Shown piece by piece: positions 1 through 13,900 of a DNA stretch of 64,000 bases. The stretch is from Chrysemys picta bellii (taxonomy: Eukaryota). Where the stretch lies: NCBI RefSeq assembly GCF_011386835.1, contig NC_088797.1, forward strand, positions 32,612,001 to 32,676,000, in the 5' to 3' direction. The notes below the pieces were generated by a model. That model searched no databases, was not told the DNA's origin, and saw only the letters and a program-made list of their open reading frames with translations. The translations under genes were made by a program, and so were the position numbers. The stretch's first letter is position 1; the number at the start of each line of letters is the position of its first letter.

Positions 1-754
1 AGGAGGTGGAGTCTATTACAGCCCTACCCCCTTGTGGGTTGAGTCTGCTCTCATAGCCACACCCACCAGGAGGCAGAGTCTAGTATAGCCCTTCGCCCCT
101 TGGGGGCAGAGCCTGCTCTCCAGTTCACTCGCTTGGTGGTTGAGTCTGTTATAGCCCCACCCCTCTTGGAGGCATCAAGTCTATTCTCACAACACTACCT
201 CCTTGGAGACAGGACCCTTCCCCACATGCACAACTAACCTGTGGGACTCCCCACTGTAGGTACAAAGAGCTCTGATTGGTGGAGCTGGGTTACCAGTAGC
301 ACCTCCTGCCATTGCACAGCTCTGAGTCCCTCCCTCGCTTCTCCCTGAGGTTCAAGTTTCTTGTCACCCTAGGCCCTTCTGGGCACTGTCCAACCCACGT
401 GGCATGGCTCCCCTTGGCCTCCGCTACACTGCCAGCAACACAGGAGCCTGTAAGAGACCAGCCCCCATTAACAATAATTATGTCTATACTGAGAGAAGGT
501 AGAGATTGGGAATGTATCCCACTGCCTCCATCAATCACACACTAAGTCACATGGGTTCTTAGTTTGTATGCTTGTCTGTCGGGCACTCGGCAAAACAGGG
601 TCCCGAGATCGATCTTGCAAGCTAAGCAGAATTATGTCTCACTAATACTTGGACGGGAAACCTCCAAAGAAAATTCACAGTCCTGCAAAGGATGCGGTGG
701 AGACTCAGTATAGGGTGCTTTCCCCTCACAATCAGCACTGACCCCATACCCCAG

Positions 755-905
755 CACAGTGCCACCCAATGCTGGGCAAGAGATCATTATATAAACAGCT
801 CCCATGCCCTCCCCCCCAGAGGCGGCTGCATCTTAGCACCGGACGAGGGATCCCTGTATGAACAGCCCCCACACGCCATCTCAGCACCAGGTGAAAGATC
901 CCTGC
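755..905 (+). repeat. About 3 tandem copies of a ~60-bp dispersed repeat (cccagaggYggctgcatctcagcac...atccctgtataaacagctccca)
   Basis: The same unit recurs at ~1555-1590, ~9785-9835 and as a 5-6 copy array at ~20625-20905; inverted copies lie near 49420-49510. Confidence 0.6.
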
Positions 906-959
906 ATCTGTAGGGAGGTTTTCAAGACAGTCTCAATCTCTTGTCTGTTTCCCCCCCAG

Positions 960-3529
960 GCTGCAGGAGGACTATTCCAACACCCAACGCACCAACCAGC
1001 TGCTGGAGGAGAAACTTCACCTCATTGTAAGGGCAGCTTCATTGCTGGCAGGGAGCAGTCCCAGATTTGGGCTTACAGACCCCCACATTGAAAGGGAGCA
1101 ACCCCATGGTCAGATCCATGAGCCCTGGAGACTCAGCTGCCCAGACAGGGAACAACCCATTACCTCATTCAATGTAGGCTCTTACACTGGGCCCATCACC
1201 GTGGTATTTGAGCCTCTAACAGCTGCTCTATCCATATATTAAGTGCACCATGTAGCTACACTCCCGAGGGACGTGGGGGTCTGATTTTTCCATCCCACAA
1301 TCTCTCCCATAGTTCTGATGAGACATGAAGCCAAATCTCTCTCCCCCGCCCCCCACCAGGGTATTCAGCTGCCCTGACAATTTGCACAGAGATTTGGATA
1401 TTAACCAGGGTATCCCAGCCAAATCCCAAACCACTTCATGGGCCTAAATTGCTCCCTGCCTGGCAGTTTCAATCAGACACAGGATCATCCCACATGTCAT
1501 ATCTTCAAATGCTGTCCAACATTGTTGTGCAGATGTTAAACAGCCCCCATATCCCACCCCAGAGGTGGCTGCATCTCAGCGCTGGGGGACCAGGAGTCCT
1601 GATTCCCAGCCTCCAAGCACTAGGCCATTCTTCCCCTGACCATCTAGTCTTGCTGTCCTGAGCCCTTTGCTGTCTCCCTCCCCCCGCAGGCTCAGAGCAT
1701 GGCAGCTGAGAAACAAACCCTGAACCAGCACATTACTGAGCTGCTCGAGAGGCTTATTAGTGCCCAGAACACCATCTGCACGCTGGAGAGACTCAACGTG
1801 AGCTCAGGGGTGGGGGAGGCGGGCGGCCTGGGGAGCACAGACTGGGGGAGCACGGGGAGGGTTCCTGGCAGTGGGGGTGGCGTGTGGGCTATGGGGGGAG
1901 GGGGCAGGCAGAAGTGGTGCTGGGAAGGAGTGGGAAATGCTTCCATCTGTGGAGTCAAAAATCCAGTACCAAGGAAATGTTGCTAGATTCCGGAGCCAGT
2001 GGCAGCCTCACATTTTTAGAGCCAAACAGGTGAGGAATTAGTGCCGTGTATCCCTGGAAAGCTGGGCCCCAGCTTTCTAACAGCGCAGAGAGACCAGGTC
2101 TAACCCCCACGATGTCAGAGATACGGAGCCTCAATCTGCCCCAGCACTTTGCGACCCTTTCAAACGGCTCTGGCCTCAGGGAAATAAGCTCAAAGGTAAT
2201 CAGAATCATATGACTGGGGGGTCCAATAGCTTGACAACCCTCAGGGCTACACATAAAGGCCCTATGCTGCTGGAAAGCTGAAAATCCCAGCTTTCCATCA
2301 GGGCAAGTCTTGCATTATTAGCTTGAAGACTTGAGGAGATACTGCACCTTAAACAGCGATGGCTGCAAGCGTTAGCAGTTTTTGAGGCTGCTAAACTAAC
2401 ACCAGAGTTCCAGAGGGTAATCAGACTGACGGGATTGATAAATCCAATTCGTAGAGCTCGAAACAAATGCCTGACACCACTGAAAAGCTGAGGGTACAAA
2501 CCGTTCAGATATAGCACTCGCGGTTAAGGAGATATTGGGCTTTAAACCACCGCTGGTCCCGGCCACACTGGGCTGGTGTGAGTGACATCCCCTCCCCCGT
2601 CCCTGCAGATCTCGATGCTGCTGTCAGAATCAGCGGGGAAGCACCGTCACATGGAGAAGGCCAGTTCCGCCGACAGCCTCTACTCCCTGCACATCTCTGA
2701 CGTGGCGCCCCCTCCCGCCTTCATGGACAGTGCCTCCGATGCCCACACCACCACCCCCAGCCAGTCTGACTCGGCCACAGAGGCCAACAAGCCGGACTGC
2801 AGCTCTGAGTCAGACACAGCCATGCCCAACGGAGACAGGACTCCGGTGCCCAACTACCACAGCCTCCCATCCCCGGGGCAGCTGGAAAGCCACGGGAGAA
2901 CCACGGCCTTCACGCCGTGGAAGCAGCAGTGCCCTGGAGAGCTGCTGGAGCACGTCAACTCGACAGAAAGTGAGTGCAGTGCGGAGGAAGGGGCCCAGGT
3001 CCATGCCCTCCCCATGCCACACTTCCTCTACCTGAGGCAGGAGGCGCTGGTGGCTCCCTCAGTGCCCACCGTGCCGCCCACTGATGCCCTGCGCCCTCCG
3101 TCCCCGCAGGGCCTGCTGCTCGGTGGGCGGCTGGAGCTAGTGCCAGTGCCGGAGCTCAGCAGCACCGACAGCTCCGATGGGGATGAGGCCTGGAGCCAGG
3201 GCCTAGGGGAGAAGGAACCAGGGGTGTCTCTGGATTACCAGTCAGCTCAGAAGATCCTGGACAGCCTGCTGAGGCAGCACCAACACCTGGAGAAGGAGCC
3301 GGCGAAGGCGAGTGGAGGGGGCTATCAGGACAGGAGCGAGATGGGCCAGGCCAAGGGGCACCAGCGCCGGATTCGCTACTACTGGGACTTCCAGAGTCCG
3401 GGCAAGGAGCAGCCCCTGCTGCACCAGCCCCAGCATGGAGGGGGGTCCCTTCCCCGGGCCAAGGGCGAGAAGGTGTTGCAAAGGGAGCAGGAGTGTGGGG
3501 ATGGGGTGATGGACTCCACACTGCTGTAA
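960..3529 (+). CDS. BEGAIN/TJAP1(Pilt)-family coiled-coil protein, 3' part (5' exons lie upstream of the window)
   Basis: Exons 960-1026 (LQEDYSNTQRTNQLLEEKLHLI), 1690-1797 (AQSMAAEKQTLNQHITELLERLISAQNTICTLERLN) and 2609-3529 (ISMLLSESAGKHRHMEK...MDSTLL*) have AG/GT ends, polypyrimidine tracts and compatible phase-0 joins. They align by eye to recalled human BEGAIN segments IQSNYMALQRINQELEDKLYRM / GQHYEEEKRALSHEIVALNSHLLEAKVTIDKLSEDN / VSELPSDFQERVSLHMEK. Confidence 0.75.
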
Positions 3530-4156
3530 GGGGACCCATAGGCAGATGAGACCCCTGCCCCACAGCCACTTCACTGTCTACCTCCTGCTGCCCCCTACCA
3601 CTTCACTGTCTACCCCCTCACCACGGCAAGGAGCCCAGGGGATCAGGGGTGCCCCACTGAGCATAGGGAACTGTAGTCTGGGTTTGCTACAGACTGCCTG
3701 GGGGACAGACAGAACCAGAGAGGGGGTGGGGGGGACACGTTGACCCAGAGAGATCTGTGGGGAGAGGACAGACAGACAGGCCAGAGAAATGAGAGGAAAC
3801 AGCTAGAGATAGATACCCAGAGGGATGGGTTGGGGGATGGACAGACAGAACCAGAAATGGTGGGGGAAGGGGATGGGGATAGACCCAAATAGAAAGGAGG
3901 GGGACACAGACAGAGGAAAGTAGGGGGGATCCCACAGTAGGGGGGCCAGAAGCATCAATCCTGGGCTGACCCCTCTAGCTCCACCCCACCCTGCTGCTCT
4001 CCCCACCAGCCCCACCTGTATACATTTGCATTTACCTTGCTAACTGTGATCTGATCCGCCCCCACCTCCCCAAACCCCTGTACACAGGCGCCTGGACTGA
4101 GTCGCCAGCATGACCTGACCCCTTTTAATTAAAATTTCAGACATCGACGTTAAAGG

Positions 4157-4162
4157 AATAAA
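4157..4162 (+). terminator. Polyadenylation signal of the BEGAIN-like gene
   Basis: AATAAA ~630 nt after the stop codon, with a second signal ATTAAA at 4128-4133. Confidence 0.5.
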
Positions 4163-4927
4163 CTCCTCAGGCCAACGGGTGTTTGATTTCAGCCTGCGGA
4201 GCTGGGCCAGCACATGCGGAAGAGTCACCCGGCGCTGAGATGAAGCCGTCTTCGGGGTGGGACACGGGGCTGTTTATAGAAAGATTCCCTCAACTACTGC
4301 TGAGATGCAGGTTCTATCCCCAGCTCTGGGAAGGGTGTGGAGTCTAGTGGGTTAGGGTGGGAGGCTGGGAGCCAGGATGCCTGGGTTCCATTTGTCCATC
4401 TGAAAGAGGAGATCTATCTATCTGCCAGTCTCCCTGCTCTAACCATCAAATGTCTCTCTTCCCAGAGCCAGGGACAGAACTCAGGAGTCCTGCTCCAACT
4501 CCCTGCTCTAGCCAATATAATCCACTTCTTCCCCAGGGCCACATATAGGACCCAGAGTCCTGACTCCCAGCACACACCCCCAACCTGAACCCACAAGACC
4601 CCACACCCTTCTCAGAGCTGAGTCTAGAACCCAGGAGTCCTGTCTTCTCTTGGGAAGCTCTCACCCCACCAATGCCCTTCCTAATGGGGGTGGGGAATGG
4701 AACCACCAACCACCCTTCCATCTGTTTCCTGATTCCCCTTTATGGGACATCGGTTTTATGGCCCTGTTCCTGGTGTCCAAAGGGCATCCCTTAGTGCCAT
4801 GAATTGGGGGTATTGCATGGGGAGGGAGATAAGGCGGCTAGGTGGATCTGGGAGCTAATGAGTAACCCCATGAACCCTGGTGACAGGATCAGAGGCGTTA
4901 GCTGATCCAGAGTGCCCCATCTGCTGC

Positions 4928-4977: not shown

Positions 4978-7900
4978 ATGGCAGGCTGTGGGATGAGCTG
5001 GCTGAAGATCCTAGGGGCCGTGATTGTGGGGGCCCTGCTGCTGACGGTCGGAATTCTGTTGGGCCACTTTGCCATCCCCAAAGGGGGGAATGGCTCGGGA
5101 GCGCCCAGCTGGGTGCAGACCGTGGGCCGGGATCTGAATGAATCCCTGCTGCAGAGCTTCATGGATCAGGTGGAGAGCGAGAAGATCCGGGAGAATCTGA
5201 AGTAAGGAGGGGAGGAGAGATGGAAAAGCCCCATTGAATTCACCCACATTCAGGAGATCCAGGACTCCTGGGCTGTGCAAGGCAGGATCATCCCTTAGAG
5301 CCTATTCCCCCCCAGGGATACAGGATCATCCCCTACAATCCATCCCCCCTGCCCCCGGGGACAGGATAGCCTCCTCTCAACCTGTGGCCAGATTGGAACC
5401 AGTGCCCCTATCAAGGGAGAGGACCTGTATCCCTAGCTTGTAGCCCCAGTTCTGGGAGAGGAGTGGTGTTTAGTGGTTACAACGGGAGTGGGAGGAGGAG
5501 TTGGAAGCCAGGACTCCTGGGTTCTATCCCCCACCAGAACCTGCAGTCCTCAGGGAGCTGTGATCTCAGGCACTCCCCTGTACCCCTCACCAGAGCCCTG
5601 GCCTCCCAGCCCCACATGGCTACAACTAAGGGGGATGAGGAGCTCGTAAAGCTGCTGCTGAGGCGCTGGCAGGACCCACAGATCGGTCTGGACAGCACCA
5701 GCGAGGATGTGTACGGCGCGTTCCTGTCCTTCCCTGACCCACAGAGACCCAACAGCGTGGCCGTGGGTGTGTGTGGGCAAGTGAGGGCTGGGTCTGCGTG
5801 TGCAGGGCACAGGGCTGTAGTGGGGGATCAGGGTACTGGAGGGGGGGCTGGAAGGGGTGGTGGAAGGAGGGCAGGGGGAACTGGGAGATAGGGCAAATGG
5901 GTGCAGGGGCGAGGGGGACACTGGGGCAGCTGGGCACAGAGGCTTGTGGGGTGCTAGATAGGCCCTGAGACAGCTGGGGCTAGAGAACGGACAGGCAGCA
6001 GGAACTGGGGCAGGTCTAAGGGGGAGAATGGGGCAGGGGACAGGCCAGGGGGTGGAATTAAGGCAGCTGAGGACAGGGAGCTGGAGGGACGGGATTGGGA
6101 ACAGACAAGGGCAGAGGGGAGCAGGGAGAGATGAGGCAGATGGGGGCAAAGGTCAGAATGGGATGTCCCACAGCAGGCACCCCACAGCTGACGAGATCTG
6201 CCTCCACCCCCAGTGGAGAACAGCAGCCAGATCTTCACAACCCGGCGCAGCGAGAAGAACGTGACAGCAGACCAGGCCCATGCAGATGTGGTTCAGCCGT
6301 ACGCTGCCTACGCACCCCCTGGGAACCCCAGGGTATGGAGCAGGGCTGGGTATAATCCCTCGTGACCGCCTTGTGGCCTCAATTCAGACCCTCCCCCTGC
6401 ACCCAGGGGCTGTCAACGAGTTATCTTATCTCCTCTCCCAGTCAGGACCATGTCCCTTCTTTTATGAGCCCATCAAGGCTGCTCAGGGATCTCTGTCCCC
6501 AGGGTGACATGCCAACCACTGTGTATCTATGGAGACAGACAATCCCCCGCCCTGCCCAGGTCCTCATGTATCCACAAACAGCTGTCACCGAGCCAACAGC
6601 CACTTATCCAAAGCCAGCCACACAGGTTGTCACTCCACATCTCTCCAGACAAACAGCCACCCAGACATGTCGCCTTGCCAATAGCCACATGTCCATGGAG
6701 ATAGTCACCCCAAATGTCACCACAAGACAGCCACGTATTCCGAGACAAACAGCAAGCATCACACAGGTTGTCACTCCAACAGGTGGGGTATCCTGAATGG
6801 CTGCCCTCAGGCTGTGGTGGCAACAGCCGTGTATCCCAAGACAGACAGCTACCCCCCACATCCCCATGCTGATGACCACATGGCCACGGAGCCAGGAAGA
6901 CATATTGCCATGCCAACAGCCACGCAATCCCAGAGATAAACAGCAAGCACCACATGTCATTCTGGCAACAGACACATATCTACAGACAAACAGCCACCCA
7001 GACAGGTCCCCTTGCCAACAGCCATGTGTCCAAAGAGACAGTCACCCCAAATGTCACCACAAGACAGCCACGTATTCCCAGAGACAAACAGCAAGCACCA
7101 CACATCATCTTGCCAACAGCCATGTACCCCCAGAGATAAATAGCCACCCCCACATCTCGTCATGCCAACAACCACATATCCTGAGGGATAAACACCCCTA
7201 ACACATTGCTGTGCCAACAGATACATATTCCTGGAGACAAACAGCCTCCCCTTGGCCCCCATCACCAAGCTGACAGCCATGTACCCATGGAGACAAATGG
7301 CTGCTCTCACATCAAGGATCCAAGTGGGCCCTGTCCCCATGGCAACTTTATCTCCCCATCCCGTCCCAGCAGCCCCTCTGATCCTCTCTCCCCCAGCGCC
7401 CTGGGGTTGACCCCTTTCTTCTCCCCTCAGGGGAGGCTGATATATGCCAACCAGGGCAAGCGCAGTGATTACCAGGAGCTGTTCAACATGGGCATCAACC
7501 TGAATGGCACCATCGCCATCACCCGCTACGGGGGGACCGGCCGTGCCGACAAGGTGAGGGGTACTCAGGGCCTACTGGCCCCAGACACCAGGCTTCCCCC
7601 TCATGTGGCACTGGAGAGGGGGCCTCTGGGCTCCTTTCCCCATCCCTTCCCCCTCATCCAGTTGCTCCCTCTCTGCCCCCCCATCCTAATCACCCCCCAT
7701 CCTTTGTCCCTTGTTTCTCATCCATCACCTCTCTCCCTGCCCCCCATCCCATCATCCCCTCCCCATTCCTCCAATCCCTTTCCCCCCAACATCTGACCGA
7801 AGGCCCCTTCCCCCCAAGTCCAATCACCCGTTCCCACTCCCCCAGTTCCATCAGCCCATGCATTTCCTGCCCAAGGCCTGTCCCCCCAAAGCCTGGTCAG

Positions 7901-10900
7901 CCGCAGACGGGGCACTGCACAGATCCAGGGGTGGGGGATGGCAGAAGAGTGGCCCACCTCAAGGTGGGGGGCTGGATGGAACAGTCATGGAATGCCATTG
8001 CTGCACCCCAGGAGGGTGGGGGCAGGGGAAGGCCAGCTAGAAGAGGGGGAACAGAGGCAGGAATAAGAGAACTGCTCACCACACATATTCCACTGGGACA
8101 CAGTGTATGTGGGGGACATTTTGGCTGCCCTTCCCGCTCTCCCTTGCAATGGTGGTGACGGTGGAGTGGATAATCTGACTGACCCTAACTCTCTAGGCAG
8201 TGAACGGGGCAGAGTTTGGTGTGGCTGGTGTGGTGGTGTATACAGACCCTGCGGATATCAATGATAGGCGGGCATCCGAGGAGGAGACCTACCCCAACTC
8301 CTGGTACATGCCCCCCTCCGGTGTGGAGCGGGGCTCTTACAACGGGTACTTCGGGGACCTACTCACGCCCTACTATCCTGCCAAAGGTAACATGCCTGGG
8401 CAGGGCAGGGCAGGGCGGGACTGGCTTTGACCCACAATGCCTCTTGCTGTTCCCTTCCACGAAGAAGAGGGGCATCTGTCCCAACCCCCTGCTGATGAGG
8501 CCAAGAGCCTCCTTGAATTCATCCCCCCACCCCTGCTCTCATTCATCCAGATGACACCCCATCCTCTGCCCCCCGCTATATCCTGTAGCGGGGAGTTCTG
8601 CAGATTAACCAAATCCATGTGGGGAATTGCTGCCCTGGAGTGCCCCCTATTCCCTGGACTATAGGAGCCCACCTGGCCTCTAGGAGCCCACCTGGCCTCC
8701 TCCACACCATTCACCTGAAATCCTCTCCTTTCCCCACCATCTGCACAGAACCCGAAAGTCTTGTCTCCTAGTTCTGTGGCTCTAACCACGAGACACCACT
8801 CCCCTTCCAGCGCCAGGAATAGAACCCTGGAGTACTGACTCCCAGCCCCCTCTGCTCTAACCACTAGACTCCATTCCTCTCTCAGAGCTGGGATAGAACC
8901 CAGGAGTCCTGACTCCCCAAGCCCTCTGGTTCTCCTTGTGTGGAATCATCATCTGGGGTATGTTCCCCAGATCCAAGTCTGGATTGCCCACCATCTTTGC
9001 AGCAAATGACCCCCCCATCCCAAACAGGGCACTGGGGGGAGGGGGAAAATGAGCCCCCTTCTGATTCACCTGCCTCTCCCCCATAGAATTCACCTACAGA
9101 ATCAAGGAGTCAGAGATCCAGGGGATCCCGCCGATCCCAACCCAGCCAATTGGTTTTGAAGACGCCCAGACGCTAATCTGGTGGGTGACTAATTCAATGG
9201 AGCTAGGGCAAAGGAGCTGTGAAATCTGGGGGCTGAACCCACCCCACAATGCATTTCAGTGCCCTACTACCCATTAGACTCACAATCATATCCCTTGGCC
9301 CTGGCATTGTCCTGTAGCAGGACATAGCTGGTGAGAATGGCTGCTGGCTGGTGCACTGGACTGGGACTCAAGACCCTTGGGTTCTATTCCCGGCTCAGCC
9401 ACCAGCTTTCTGGGTGACCTTGGACAAGACACTTCCCCCTCTTTGTGCCTCAGTTTCCCCATCTCTAGAATAGAGATAATGGCATTGACTGAAAAGCACT
9501 AGATAAGAGCTAGGGAATATTACTAACTAATCATGGAATAGTTTGAAAGGGGGATACACATGTGCACCATCACCTTTAGCCACTAGGTGGCGACAACAGC
9601 TCAGGCCCCAAGTCAAATTGTTAAAAACCCAATCATTATTAAATGGAGGGAAAGAGCTCAAAAAAATTAAATGCAGCCAGACCACCGCCTCTCCCCGTCC
9701 GATTCTGGCATTGATACACCACTGAGGTCAGGAAATTCACCGGAACTGAATTACTTCGATCATCAGCAATTTGGGGCAAGGACCCCAACCCAGAGGCGGC
9801 TGCATCTCAGTAGTGGGACAGAATCCCTGTATACCTGGGGCGTCTGGGCACTACCACAGTAAGATCATACCTAACCCCCAAAGCAACGGGAAATGCCTCG
9901 TTCTCTCACAGTCCGACTACACCATTGTACACCCACTGTATTGTACATGCCATGGCCGCTCCATAGAGGGCCATGTAGATTTTATGAGAAGTGGATTGAC
10001 CAGCCTAATAGCACATATTTCATACAACACAGTTAGGTTTAGAATGGAATGTATATATGAAGAGGGTGAGGTTCAATGGGGAGAGCAGGAGGATCTGGAA
10101 GTCAGCACTCTGGGTTCTCTTTCCAGCTCTGGGGGAGAGTGGGGGTCTAGTAGGGGTCAGAACAGCAGACCTGAGAGCCACGGTTAGACTGTGGTGGAGG
10201 ATAGGCTGGGAGTAAGGATTCCTGGGTCTGTCCCCAGATCTGGGAGGGGCATAGGGCCCAGTGCGTTGGGGGAGAGGGGGCTGGGAGTCAGGATTCCTGG
10301 GTTCTTTTCCCAGGTCTGACTCCCTGCATGCCCCGTGGACCACTAATTTCTCCACCTTGTGCCTCGATTTCTCCATCTATAAAATAAAGGCACCCACCAT
10401 GCACCTCCTGGGGAGTGTGGGGGTCCCCAGTGTTTGAGCTGTTCATGGGTGTAAAGCACTTGGAGTGTCCCAGGGGAAAGATGCAGCAGAGTAAACACAG
10501 GAATGTTATTAACAGGAGTGGGAATGCAGCCTTCGTGGCCAGGGCAGAGCTGCTGAGGAGACTGACAGAGGAGGCTTGGTGGTTTTGTGGGGACAGCAAA
10601 AGAGGTTTGGGGAGGGGCAGAGACTCTAATAACCCCATATATCTCTGGCTCTATGTTTTCAGTAACCTGTCTGGCCCTAAGGCACCCGCATCCTGGCAGG
10701 GCTCTCTGGGCTGCTCCTACCATGTGGGGCCAGGATTCCGCACGGGGGGGCAGTTTCCCAACACCAGGTATGGATAGATACATCTGGTCCAGGATTGCAT
10801 CCCACCCCCACAGCTCCCACCAAAAGTCACCTGGGAATTTTGACTTCCCCCTCCTTCTCCAACACTCCCTGTGCTGATCCAGCCCCCTGGACCCTGCACT

Positions 10901-13900
10901 CCCTAGTGGTGTCTTCCCAGCAGACACAGAGAAGTTAGATCAAACCATACGGTCCTCTTGCTGGGAGGCAACACTATTTTAGGTCTCAGGAGTCAGAACA
11001 AGAACCCAAACTCAGAGAGAGACAAAGCAGGCTGCTCCTAAAGCCCAGAGGCACAGTTCACCCACCTTACTTCATGCTGGCTTTCTGCAGACTGACTGCT
11101 GCTAGGCCCAGATCCACGCTTCACTACTGAGCCCCTGCCTGCAAGCAGGACGAGAAAAATCCCTATGAATTTAAAGTGATCACAATCTGAACAGGTTTCA
11201 AGACACCACATCAAGACCCTAGCTGACCTCAAATCCCCTCTTCTCCACGCCCCTTACACTGACCCCAACTTCCTCCTGCACCAGCTCCCTTCTTCAGACC
11301 CCCTCCAACTGCACCAACTCGCCCCAGACCCCACTGCATTAATACGTTTCCCCTCCCTGACCCCCACTGCAATGACCCTGACCCCCCAACCTTCCCTAGG
11401 CTCCTCCCATGCTGGCCCCAATTCCCCCATCCCCTGTTCTCCTCTCCAGCCCCCATCATGTCAACCCCCAACTGCAATGACCCTGACACACACATCCCAA
11501 CCCCCACTAGGCTGACCCCAGCTCCTCCTGCTCTCCCCACAGCGACGTCCAGGTAAACGTCCACAACCAGCGAGTCATCAAGAACTCCTCCAATGTGATG
11601 GGGTTCATCCGGGGCAGCGAGGAACCTGGTGAGTGTCCCCCCCAGAACAACCACCAAGCACCCCCACACCTACCACTACTCCCATTCCCCCAGCCCCCTC
11701 TCCCCCACCCCACAAGCCAGGAGTGTCCCCCACCCTGCCCCATTCACCATACTGGGATCCACCTCTCTCCACGCCCATTCCCCCAACCTCTCATTCTCTC
11801 CCCCTCTCCATGCCCTGGAGCACCCCTCAGTGGGCTCCTCTTCCCCCCATGCCCAAGAGTGCTCCCCAGTGACCCTCAGCCCCACCTTATTGAGCTCCCC
11901 ACCCCATTCCAACACTGCTCCTTTACCATCTGGGCTCACGGGCAGCAAGCTCCCCCCACCACACTCCATCCCAAGCAGACCTCCCCACCCCCGTGCACTC
12001 CCTCCCACACCCCGATCAGCAGCAGAGCTCCGTCTCTCTCCTCGCCCCCCCCAGACAGGTACGTCCTCTATGGCAATCACCGGGACAGCTGGGTGCATGG
12101 AGCCATCGACCCGAGCAGTGGGACAGCTGTCATGCTGGAGATCACCCGCGTGCTGGGCAAGATGCTGAAAGAAGGTATGAGGGTTTGGGGGATGCACCGG
12201 GGTGCAACTATCCCCAGTGCACAGCTAGAGAAACTGAGGCACATAGTGGACTTGCCCTTGAGGTCAGCCAGCACATCAGTGGCAGAACCCAGGAGTCCTG
12301 ACTCTCAGAACCGCCCTGCTCTAACCACTACGTCTGAATCTCCAGGGTGTGTGTTTCTCCACAGGGAAGTGGCGCCCCAGAAGGTCCATTATCTTTGGCA
12401 GCTGGGGGGCTGAGGAGTTCGGTCTGATCGGCTCCACCGAGTACACGGAGGTAAAAACCCAAGAGAGAGGGGGATTGACGGCGGCTCCCCTTTGGAGGGA
12501 ATAAGATGGGAGGGTGGGTGGACATGGCTGCTGCCCCCTGCTCCATCCAAACACCCAGGTATGTGCTGAATGTACTGTAGCTGATCGGGATAGTTACAAT
12601 GGGACTGTCACTCTTGGGAACCCTCCTCTCTGCACCAGACCCATGGGCCCAGCCAGCCCGGATCAGACCCATGCAGCTCACCCGATCCCATTGCACTAAC
12701 CACTGGGCCTCTCCCTTGCCCAGGAATTCTACAGCAAACTGCAGGAGCGGAGTGTGGCCTATATCAACGTGGACATCTCCGTCTTTGGTGAGCGTCCGTT
12801 TGTCCTGCCTGCCCTCCTCCGCTCTTGCTGCACCATCCCCATCTCTGCTTTGTGTAGAAGGGCCGCGACACTAGGCTCAGGCGGGCTTGGGTGTTTGTGG
12901 GGAGGAAGGAATGAAAGGGAGCGTGCGTGCGAGAGTGCATGTGCAATCAGACGGGCACAAGTGCAAGAGCCTGCATGCAACTGAATACGTGTCCGAGAGG
13001 GTGTGCAAGAGTACACTTGCTAGAGGGTGCAACTGAACAGCCATCAAAGGGAGAGCATGTGCGCAAGAGCATGCAATCAGTCGGTGCCAGCATAAACAAA
13101 CGAGAGCTAGGAGCACGCACTAGTGCAAGTGTGCAAAGGTGCTCACAAGAGGGCACTCTCCCCCCAAACGTCAGCGGGTGGCCGAGAGTGCAGGGGATGC
13201 CCGTCTGGCTGTGCTGCAGGTCAGCTGGTGCCCCAGAGCCCTGGGGAGCGGTGGGTCGCCCTGTATGATCCGGCATAGTCCCTAACATTGCCTCCCCCGT
13301 GCTTTCCACAGCCAACGCCACCCTGAGAGCCCAGGGGACGCCGCCTGCCCAGAGCGTCATCTTTGCAGCTGCCAAGCAGGTACCGGGGTGGATGTGTGGT
13401 GGGGGAGGTGCGTGTGTCCATCCCCTCTCCCACTGCAGGGGAGTCTGACTCATGTGCGCCTCTTCTAGGTCCAAACCCCAGCCAGTTCCTCCGTGTCCGT
13501 CTATGACAACTGGAGAAACCACTTCAACCGCATCAGCCCCAGCTACGGCGTCATCCCCAAGTGAGTCCCCAAGTCAGTGGGAGCCGCCCCCCCACTCCAA
13601 GGGTGGATTATAGGGAGTGGGAGGGACAGGAAAGGGGCCAAGATCTTCTCCTCCCCACCTCCTTCTGTGGCTCAGATTGAAGAGAAAGCTTCATTGTTGG
13701 GGGAGTAGCAGATGTGGAGGGGACACTGGGCTGGATGGGCCCCCTGTTCTGATCCACAGCGGGGATACGGGGCTAAACAGGCCCATTGGTCTGATCTGGG
13801 GTGGCAGAGAGGGAGAATACCAGGAGCCTGGGCAACTCTGAACCATGACCCCAGCCACAGAACAAACCAAAGAACATGGGCTTGGGGATCTGCCCCCGTA

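Follow-up and report, generated by a model that had tools for sequence, protein, structure and literature searches.

The locus and its transcripts

This article describes the 3′ end of a gene of the painted turtle Chrysemys picta bellii, found in a stretch of 64,000 nucleotides (nt) (RefSeq assembly GCF_011386835.1, contig NC_088797.1, positions 32,612,001 to 32,676,000 of the forward strand), hereafter called the window. Positions 960-3529 of the window are the last three coding exons of an expressed gene belonging to the TJAP1/BEGAIN coiled-coil family. The gene is neither TJAP1 nor BEGAIN: it is a third ancient vertebrate paralogue, sister to both. Its 3′ end is built as follows:

960-1026, + strand: coding exon of 67 nt, with a phase-split R codon and then LQEDYSNTQRTNQLLEEKLHLI; middle of the BEGAIN_coil helix
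1690-1797, + strand: coding exon of 108 nt, AQSMAAEKQ...TLERLN; final part of the coiled coil
2609-3529, + strand: last coding exon, with 306 codons (2609-3526) and a TAA stop (3527-3529); mostly disordered tail with conserved short motifs
3530-4180, + strand: 3′ untranslated region, with AATAAA at 4157-4162

The 67-nt exon is preceded by an acceptor AG (958-959) after a pyrimidine tract and followed by a donor GT (1027-1028, read GTAAGG), while the 108-nt exon is bordered by AG on its 5′ side and GTGAGC on its 3′ side; the region contains no N stretch. Once joined, the three exons encode a peptide of 364 amino acids (aa) that equals residues 105-468 of P0001, a 468-aa NCBI protein named [quoted passage not shown]. 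The last exon is 100% identical to that protein, and the exon borders match the RefSeq model. The three-exon structure proposed by a first-pass annotation, made from the DNA letters, is thus upheld by both its AG/GT borders and its identity to P0001.

Expression was assessed with contigs from four small runs, originating from three studies and carrying three organism labels, aligned to window positions 1-4400. The records of these runs do not state RNA, and the transcript nature of the contigs was read from the splicing itself. In each of the four runs a single contig spans both junctions, 1026/1690 and 1797/2609, with GT..AG ends, and passes the stop. The introns are nearly free of coverage in every run, and these joints together with the bare introns identify the contigs as spliced transcripts, containing the very two junctions that the first-pass annotation had proposed to look for. 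The contigs cover the untranslated region from 3530 to 4166 and end at about 4166-4233, just beyond the AATAAA.

The coding sequence is selectively constrained. Between Chrysemys and Mauremys, the last exon has a ratio of non-synonymous to synonymous substitution rates (dN/dS) of 0.22 (14 synonymous and 10 non-synonymous changes), and a large first exon, described below, has a ratio of 0.46 and no stop codons. Relative to the last exon of the window, the transcripts under one of the two other organism labels show 7 synonymous and 2 non-synonymous changes, and those under the second label show 5 of each kind.

Three further segments of the window (809-858, 1537-1586, and 4264-4400) match very many RNA contigs, with a summed depth of hundreds to thousands and many loose ends. 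Located in introns and downstream of the gene, these segments evidently belong to a high-copy repeat that numerous transcripts contain.

Membership of the TJAP1/BEGAIN family

The comparators used here are alligator TJAP1 and a BEGAIN representative. In BLASTP, the coil aligns ungapped with alligator TJAP1 over 78 aa (46% identity, E 5e-18) and with BEGAIN over 76 aa (39% identity, E 1e-12). These alignments reproduce the residue spacings that the first-pass annotation had given for BEGAIN (Q..Y...QR.NQ.LE.KL and EK..L...I..L...L..A..TI..L...N). The Pfam model PF27583 (BEGAIN_coil) has a precomputed match on P0001, on P0012, on a shark orthologue, and on alligator TJAP1. The alligator TJAP1 coil is moreover split identically: one exon closes on a split Arg codon, the next has 67 nt (22 codons), and the one after it has 108 nt (36 codons, ending ...LN). 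Identical exon sizes and phases, the shared Pfam model, and the ungapped matches thus place the gene in the TJAP1/BEGAIN family, as had been proposed.

The family is not easily seen by all methods. A word-based protein search with the coil returned close relatives only, namely orthologues in other turtles and lizards and one paddlefish protein, named “uncharacterized” or “TJAP1-like” and all carrying PF27583. Since it missed TJAP1 and BEGAIN, an exhaustive profile search was needed, and this yielded 126 relatives. No family was found when the last exon, the 58-aa coil, P0001, and P0012 were scanned with a Pfam set lacking PF27583, and sequence searches of the PDB with the tail, the FSEFLNEIT region, and the coil returned chance or generic coiled-coil matches only. 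It is hardly conceivable that the gene is unrelated and owes its resemblance to BEGAIN and TJAP1 solely to the heptad composition of a coiled coil, for although spurious coiled-coil matches are common and the tail has no Pfam family, an ungapped E of 5e-18 stands against 0.013 or worse for all PDB coiled coils, the exon sizes and phases match those of TJAP1, and FSxFLDEIT and an N-terminal KxY[RK]KA are shared outside the coil. The match in exon structure is by itself enough to refute that reading.

Several parts common to TJAP1 and BEGAIN are missing from the turtle gene. The segment RYRxDCNLAxQLLxC, present in TJAP1, BEGAIN, and lamprey, is missing from all third-clade proteins, as it is from the invertebrate relatives seen. 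In alligator TJAP1, an 84-nt exon (ERYRQDCNLAVQLLKCNKSHFRNHKFAD) follows the coil; the turtle gene is without it, and a search of the intron at 1798-2608 for a remnant of the RYRxDCN exon found no trace. The tail ...DSLTxAQxxGxLL[ND], common to TJAP1 and BEGAIN, is likewise not present, and the turtle gene ends ...GVMDSTLL instead.

A third ancient paralogue

Terminal motifs sort the relatives into TJAP1 (MTSAAPxKKPYRKAPP ... AQEQGNLLN, with a Pilt domain), BEGAIN (MKKIYIGKTALK ... AQLYGTLLN), a small invertebrate group, and a large third group. Members of the latter are found in sharks, rays, bichir, sturgeon, paddlefish, many teleosts, a salamander, frogs, geckos, anoles, turtles, and a marsupial, with those of alligator and crane being fragments. 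A maximum-likelihood tree built from 79 rows and 98 columns of the coil splits this third clade from all the others with 100/100 support; its internal order approximates the phylogeny of the species, and the teleosts form two subclades. Constraining the sauropsid genes to group with TJAP1 costs 53 log-likelihood units (approximately unbiased, AU, test, p 3.7e-6), and constraining them to group with BEGAIN costs 56 (AU p 5.8e-12). When the coil tree is rooted with invertebrates, the third clade falls beside TJAP1 rather than BEGAIN, weakly. The suggestion that this is neither BEGAIN nor TJAP1 therefore stands, as both unions are rejected and the tree that had been called for has a separate third clade running from sharks to turtles and alligator.

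Could the locus nonetheless be the turtle's own TJAP1 or BEGAIN orthologue, with a fast-evolving tail? The name given by NCBI and a coil 46% identical to TJAP1 speak for this. Against it are the fully supported clade with its own shark-to-turtle series and the two AU tests, together with the absence of Pilt, of the RYRxDCN exon, and of the ...GxLLN end. In alligator, TJAP1 occurs alongside a fragment of the third gene, and the chromosomal neighbourhood also differs from that of TJAP1, with a NAALADL1-like neighbour in the turtle and a marsupial orthologue lying between CDCA5 and a NAALADL1-like gene. Orthology with TJAP1 or BEGAIN is thus exceedingly improbable.

The term “uncharacterised”, used in the first-pass annotation, holds in part: the gene is annotated by NCBI, as TJAP1-like or “uncharacterized LOC”, and no published description was found. 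The literature yielded no paper naming or describing a third TJAP1/BEGAIN family member, and none on the evolution of the family. What is new here is the recognition of that third member, while the gene under its automatic names and the Pfam coil model were already known. In RefSeq, the teleost orthologues P0018, P0036, and P0147 are named “filaggrin” or “knob-associated histidine-rich protein”, probably owing to a low-complexity His/Ser-rich first exon.

Upstream exon, neighbouring genes, and the mammalian line

The Chrysemys locus was also taken from the assembly as L001, a part of CM062324.1, in which a window position equals the L001 position minus 10370. The upstream part of the gene, which the first-pass annotation had left to be recovered from adjacent sequence, was found there: about 9 kb upstream lies a first exon of 1.2 kb with an open frame, which matches residues 58-448 of an 867-aa Mauremys protein at 90% identity. 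In Chrysemys this exon may start MSASAIRRKSYKKAQ, in the 170 nt upstream of L001. Intron 1 is about 9 kb long in Chrysemys versus 3.2 kb in Mauremys, and in Chrysemys it contains an insert of about 6 kb flanked by terminal repeats of about 500 nt each, which are 100% identical and stand 5.54 kb apart:

L001 3748-4252 and 9288-9790: terminal repeats of the intron-1 insert, which lies between about 6.6 kb and 0.6 kb upstream of the window's first position

This insert is a recent insertion of a long terminal repeat (LTR) element, which lengthens the Chrysemys intron. The NCBI 468-aa model begins about 210 nt 3′ of it.

Downstream, the next gene starts at window position 4978 (+ strand), with a type II membrane anchor first. 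Its product of 748 aa has PA, Peptidase_M28, and TFR_dimer domains and is NAALADL1-like.

The profile search also matched short marsupial proteins. In Dromiciops gliroides, the orthologue (positions 10001-12388 of locus L002, CM033370.1) is truncated to 216 aa. It lies between ZFPL1-CDCA5 (sororin domains) and a gene with PA, Peptidase_M28, and TFR_dimer domains, that is, the same NAALADL1-like downstream neighbour as in the turtle. What remains in this protein is KLQVLEKFF, the FSAFLDEIT helix, and the coil's first half; in the 7.7 kb that separate it from the next gene, nothing resembling the remaining coil or the tail is left. Proteins of this kind, 184-283 aa long and 55-66% identical, occur in eight marsupials; a word search of limited sensitivity found no relative in placentals or monotremes. 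CDCA5 was not found within 10 kb upstream of the Mauremys gene, its adjacency being verified for the marsupial orthologue only, and the 10-kb flanks of the shark and frog genes gave no readable synteny. The gene is truncated in marsupials, with no copy found in placental mammals, and a detailed proposal of a two-handed ligand, discussed below, takes it to have been lost in the latter. With Prox3 in the same neighbourhood, it would be one more gene in a set lost on the mammalian line.

Might the turtle gene itself be decaying, still transcribed yet heading for the loss seen in mammals, with the LTR element of intron 1 disrupting it? The truncated marsupial genes, the 6-kb element with its identical repeats, and the relaxed dN/dS of 0.46 in the first exon would fit. 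Against this, the reading frame is open in every exon, the 1.2-kb first one included, dN/dS in the last exon is 0.22, spliced transcripts occur in three turtle-like organisms, and the motifs are conserved to teleosts and sharks. Decay is therefore very improbable.

Protein architecture and conserved motifs

Full-length turtle and lizard orthologues have about 870 residues. AlphaFold2, run on the Mauremys orthologue (867 aa) with a 28-sequence alignment, predicts disorder (predicted local distance difference test, pLDDT, under 50) for 662 of the 867 residues, and four helices:

Residues 271-301: helix with the invariant K..FS.FL.EIT.Q motif, pLDDT about 90
Residues 483-560: the coil, 78 residues, pLDDT about 97
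Residues 563-578: helix opening the last exon, pLDDT 64-72
Residues 772-787: helix LDYQSAQKILDSLL, pLDDT about 86

Within the last exon, for which no Pfam family and no solved structural relative were found, the following short elements can be recognized:

2609-2659, + strand: ISMLLSESAGKHRHMEK, short helix opening the exon; positional equivalent of TJAP1 LPYELQDMVNKH, with weak homology
2708-2728, + strand: PPPAFMD motif, conserved across the third clade
2903-2920, + strand: TAFTPW motif, conserved from shark to turtle
3230-3277, + strand: LDYQSAQKILDSLLRQ, short helix conserved in turtles, lizards, and paddlefish
3512-3526, + strand: C-terminal DSTLL, fitting the class I PDZ-binding motif (x-S/T-x-hydrophobic-COOH)

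The first-pass annotation had likened the opening of this exon, ISMLLSE..HMEK, to VSELPSD..HMEK. The exon-start phase is indeed the same as for TJAP1 LPYELQDMVNKH and BEGAIN LPADFQERVSLHMEK; the homology, however, is weak. HMEK varies within its own clade (CAEK in Pogona, QGVR in Anolis, LELE in paddlefish), and a rival alignment to SQLLQSSKTYHR scores about as well (E 8).

Across the third clade, the conserved islands are SSWSSEAS, RKAKSME, the FSxFLNEIT helix, the coil, PPPAFMD, and TAFxPW. Exon 1, upstream of the window, carries KLQVMEKFF, RKAKSME, and the FSxFLNEIT helix and, judging by the orthologues, RRKSYKKAQ. At the other end of the protein, turtles, squamates, salamander, and frogs have DSTLL, DSTSL, DSTFL, or DSTML, and one teleost paralogue has E-R/S-T-x-L; TJAP1 and BEGAIN end in LLN or LLD. 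The N-terminal RRKSYKKAQ of Mauremys, gecko, and anole stands where TJAP1 has its Mint-PTB-binding peptide, KPYRKAPPEHRE. It is the sole RxxSYxxA match in 105,449 residues of family proteins, and shuffles give about one match per set, at random positions. A second candidate ligand of guanylate kinase (GK) domains, RKAKSME, was set aside, as its Lys at position -3 is disfavoured by the published consensus.

Long forms of TJAP1 bear on the age of this architecture. In Chiloscyllium (P0077/P0174) and Muraenolepis (P0100), TJAP1 has long isoforms of 921-1011 aa beside short ones of 634 aa; in the long isoforms the FSxFLDEIT helix stands after the N-terminal motif and before the coil. In TJAP1 too, the long middle region seems to be an ancestral exon with alternative use. 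Because both the FSxFLDEIT helix and the N-terminal K-x-Y-[RK]-K-A occur in these long shark and teleost forms, the long N-terminal region probably goes back to the ancestor of the family and is not a later addition to the third gene.

A putative dimeric linker of scaffolds

What is known of the relatives gives a starting point. BEGAIN dimerises via its N-terminal region and binds the GK domain of PSD-95 via its C-terminal region (PMC10716515). The TJAP1 coil is a predicted homodimer, its N-terminal KPYRKAPPEHRELR binds the Mint PTB domain, and the protein localises to the Golgi and to tight junctions (PMC10820826). A phospho-dependent consensus for GK binding, R-Phi-x-S-Y-X-X-A-Psi, has been described, and some partners bind DLG/MAGI through a PDZ motif and a GK motif both (PMC10171801).

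The third gene resembles TJAP1 in its coil, in the phases and sizes of the 67-nt and 108-nt exons, in being largely disordered, in the N-terminal K-x-Y-[RK]-K-A at residue 8, and in the FSxFLDEIT shared with long shark and teleost isoforms. It differs in having neither Pilt nor the RYRxDCNLAVQLLKC exon, in ending DSTLL instead of ...AQEQGNLLN, and in having Ser in the N-terminal motif where TJAP1 has Pro. With BEGAIN it shares the coil, a disordered tail, and a probably dimeric scaffold nature, but not the MKKIYIGKTALK start, the RYRKDCN exon, or the ...AQLYGTLLN end. Beyond the family, RRKSYKKAQ fits the consensus of SAPAP/GKAP-type GK-binding repeats; this likeness comes without sequence homology, is confined to sauropsid orthologues, and makes binding a prediction. 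A PDZ motif and a GK motif in a two-handed arrangement also recall Ephexin4/SGEF, again without sequence homology (PMC10171801).

As the most likely working model, the third paralogue, constrained and expressed, would be a dimeric linker of PDZ/MAGUK scaffolds acting via its two ends. By analogy with BEGAIN and TJAP1, the 78-residue coil would form a parallel homodimer. The C-terminal DSTLL, judged by its motif, would bind class I PDZ domains, and the N-terminal RRKSYKKAQ, judged by the consensus, would bind MAGUK GK domains under the control of a kinase switch. The linker, disordered and carrying a ligand for PDZ domains at its C-terminus and one for GK domains at its N-terminus, would tie scaffolds together. 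RRKSYKKAQ may itself be the counterpart of the Mint-PTB-binding KPYRKAPP of TJAP1. The dimerisation, the PDZ and GK binding, and the cellular site of the third paralogue are thus features that we infer. A more detailed version is put forward tentatively, and taken as a whole it is rather unlikely: a dimeric MAGUK ligand with RRKpSYKKAQ and DSTLL, one dimer of which would cross-link four DLG/MAGI sites, and which would keep the ancestral long architecture of the family.

Several observations weigh against a linker of this kind. No Pilt domain (PF15453) was found by Pfam scan in the window exon, P0001, or P0012, while TJAP1 representatives match it at E 7e-76 and 3e-96. The C-terminal region with which BEGAIN binds the PSD-95 GK domain is not conserved in the third gene, so that GK binding is not transferable from BEGAIN. 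The shark, ray, and bichir gene models are without the PDZ-motif ending. RRKSYKKAQ is seen in sauropsids only: it is degenerate in the salamander (HRNLNQNG) and not seen in fish gene models. For Chrysemys itself the motif is extrapolated from turtle and lizard orthologues, and the first exon of the short 468-aa NCBI model may be an annotation artefact.

Of the alternatives, the most serious rival is a functional family member at the Golgi or in trafficking, with Mint PTB and ARF partners as for TJAP1, rather than a MAGUK/PDZ linker at synapses or junctions; such a role is possible, if doubtful. The weak placing of the clade by TJAP1 in the invertebrate-rooted coil tree is consistent with it, as are the N-terminal motif at the position of the Mint-PTB peptide and the location of TJAP1 at the Golgi as well as at tight junctions (PMC10820826). 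On the other hand, the Pro of KPYRKAPP and the PEHR turn of the Mint complex model are replaced in the third gene (RRKSYKKAQGQ), and the C-terminal PDZ motif is specific to the third clade.

Meaning for the family

TJAP1 and BEGAIN have so far been treated as a two-gene family whose molecular roles are poorly understood. An older-looking third paralogue, kept from sharks to reptiles and birds, reveals which parts of that family are ancestral: the coil, the KxY[RK]KA motif, and the FSxFLDEIT helix. Its recognition corrects the automatic names of the teleost orthologues, and the third paralogue offers a natural comparison for the function of the coil and its flanking motifs.

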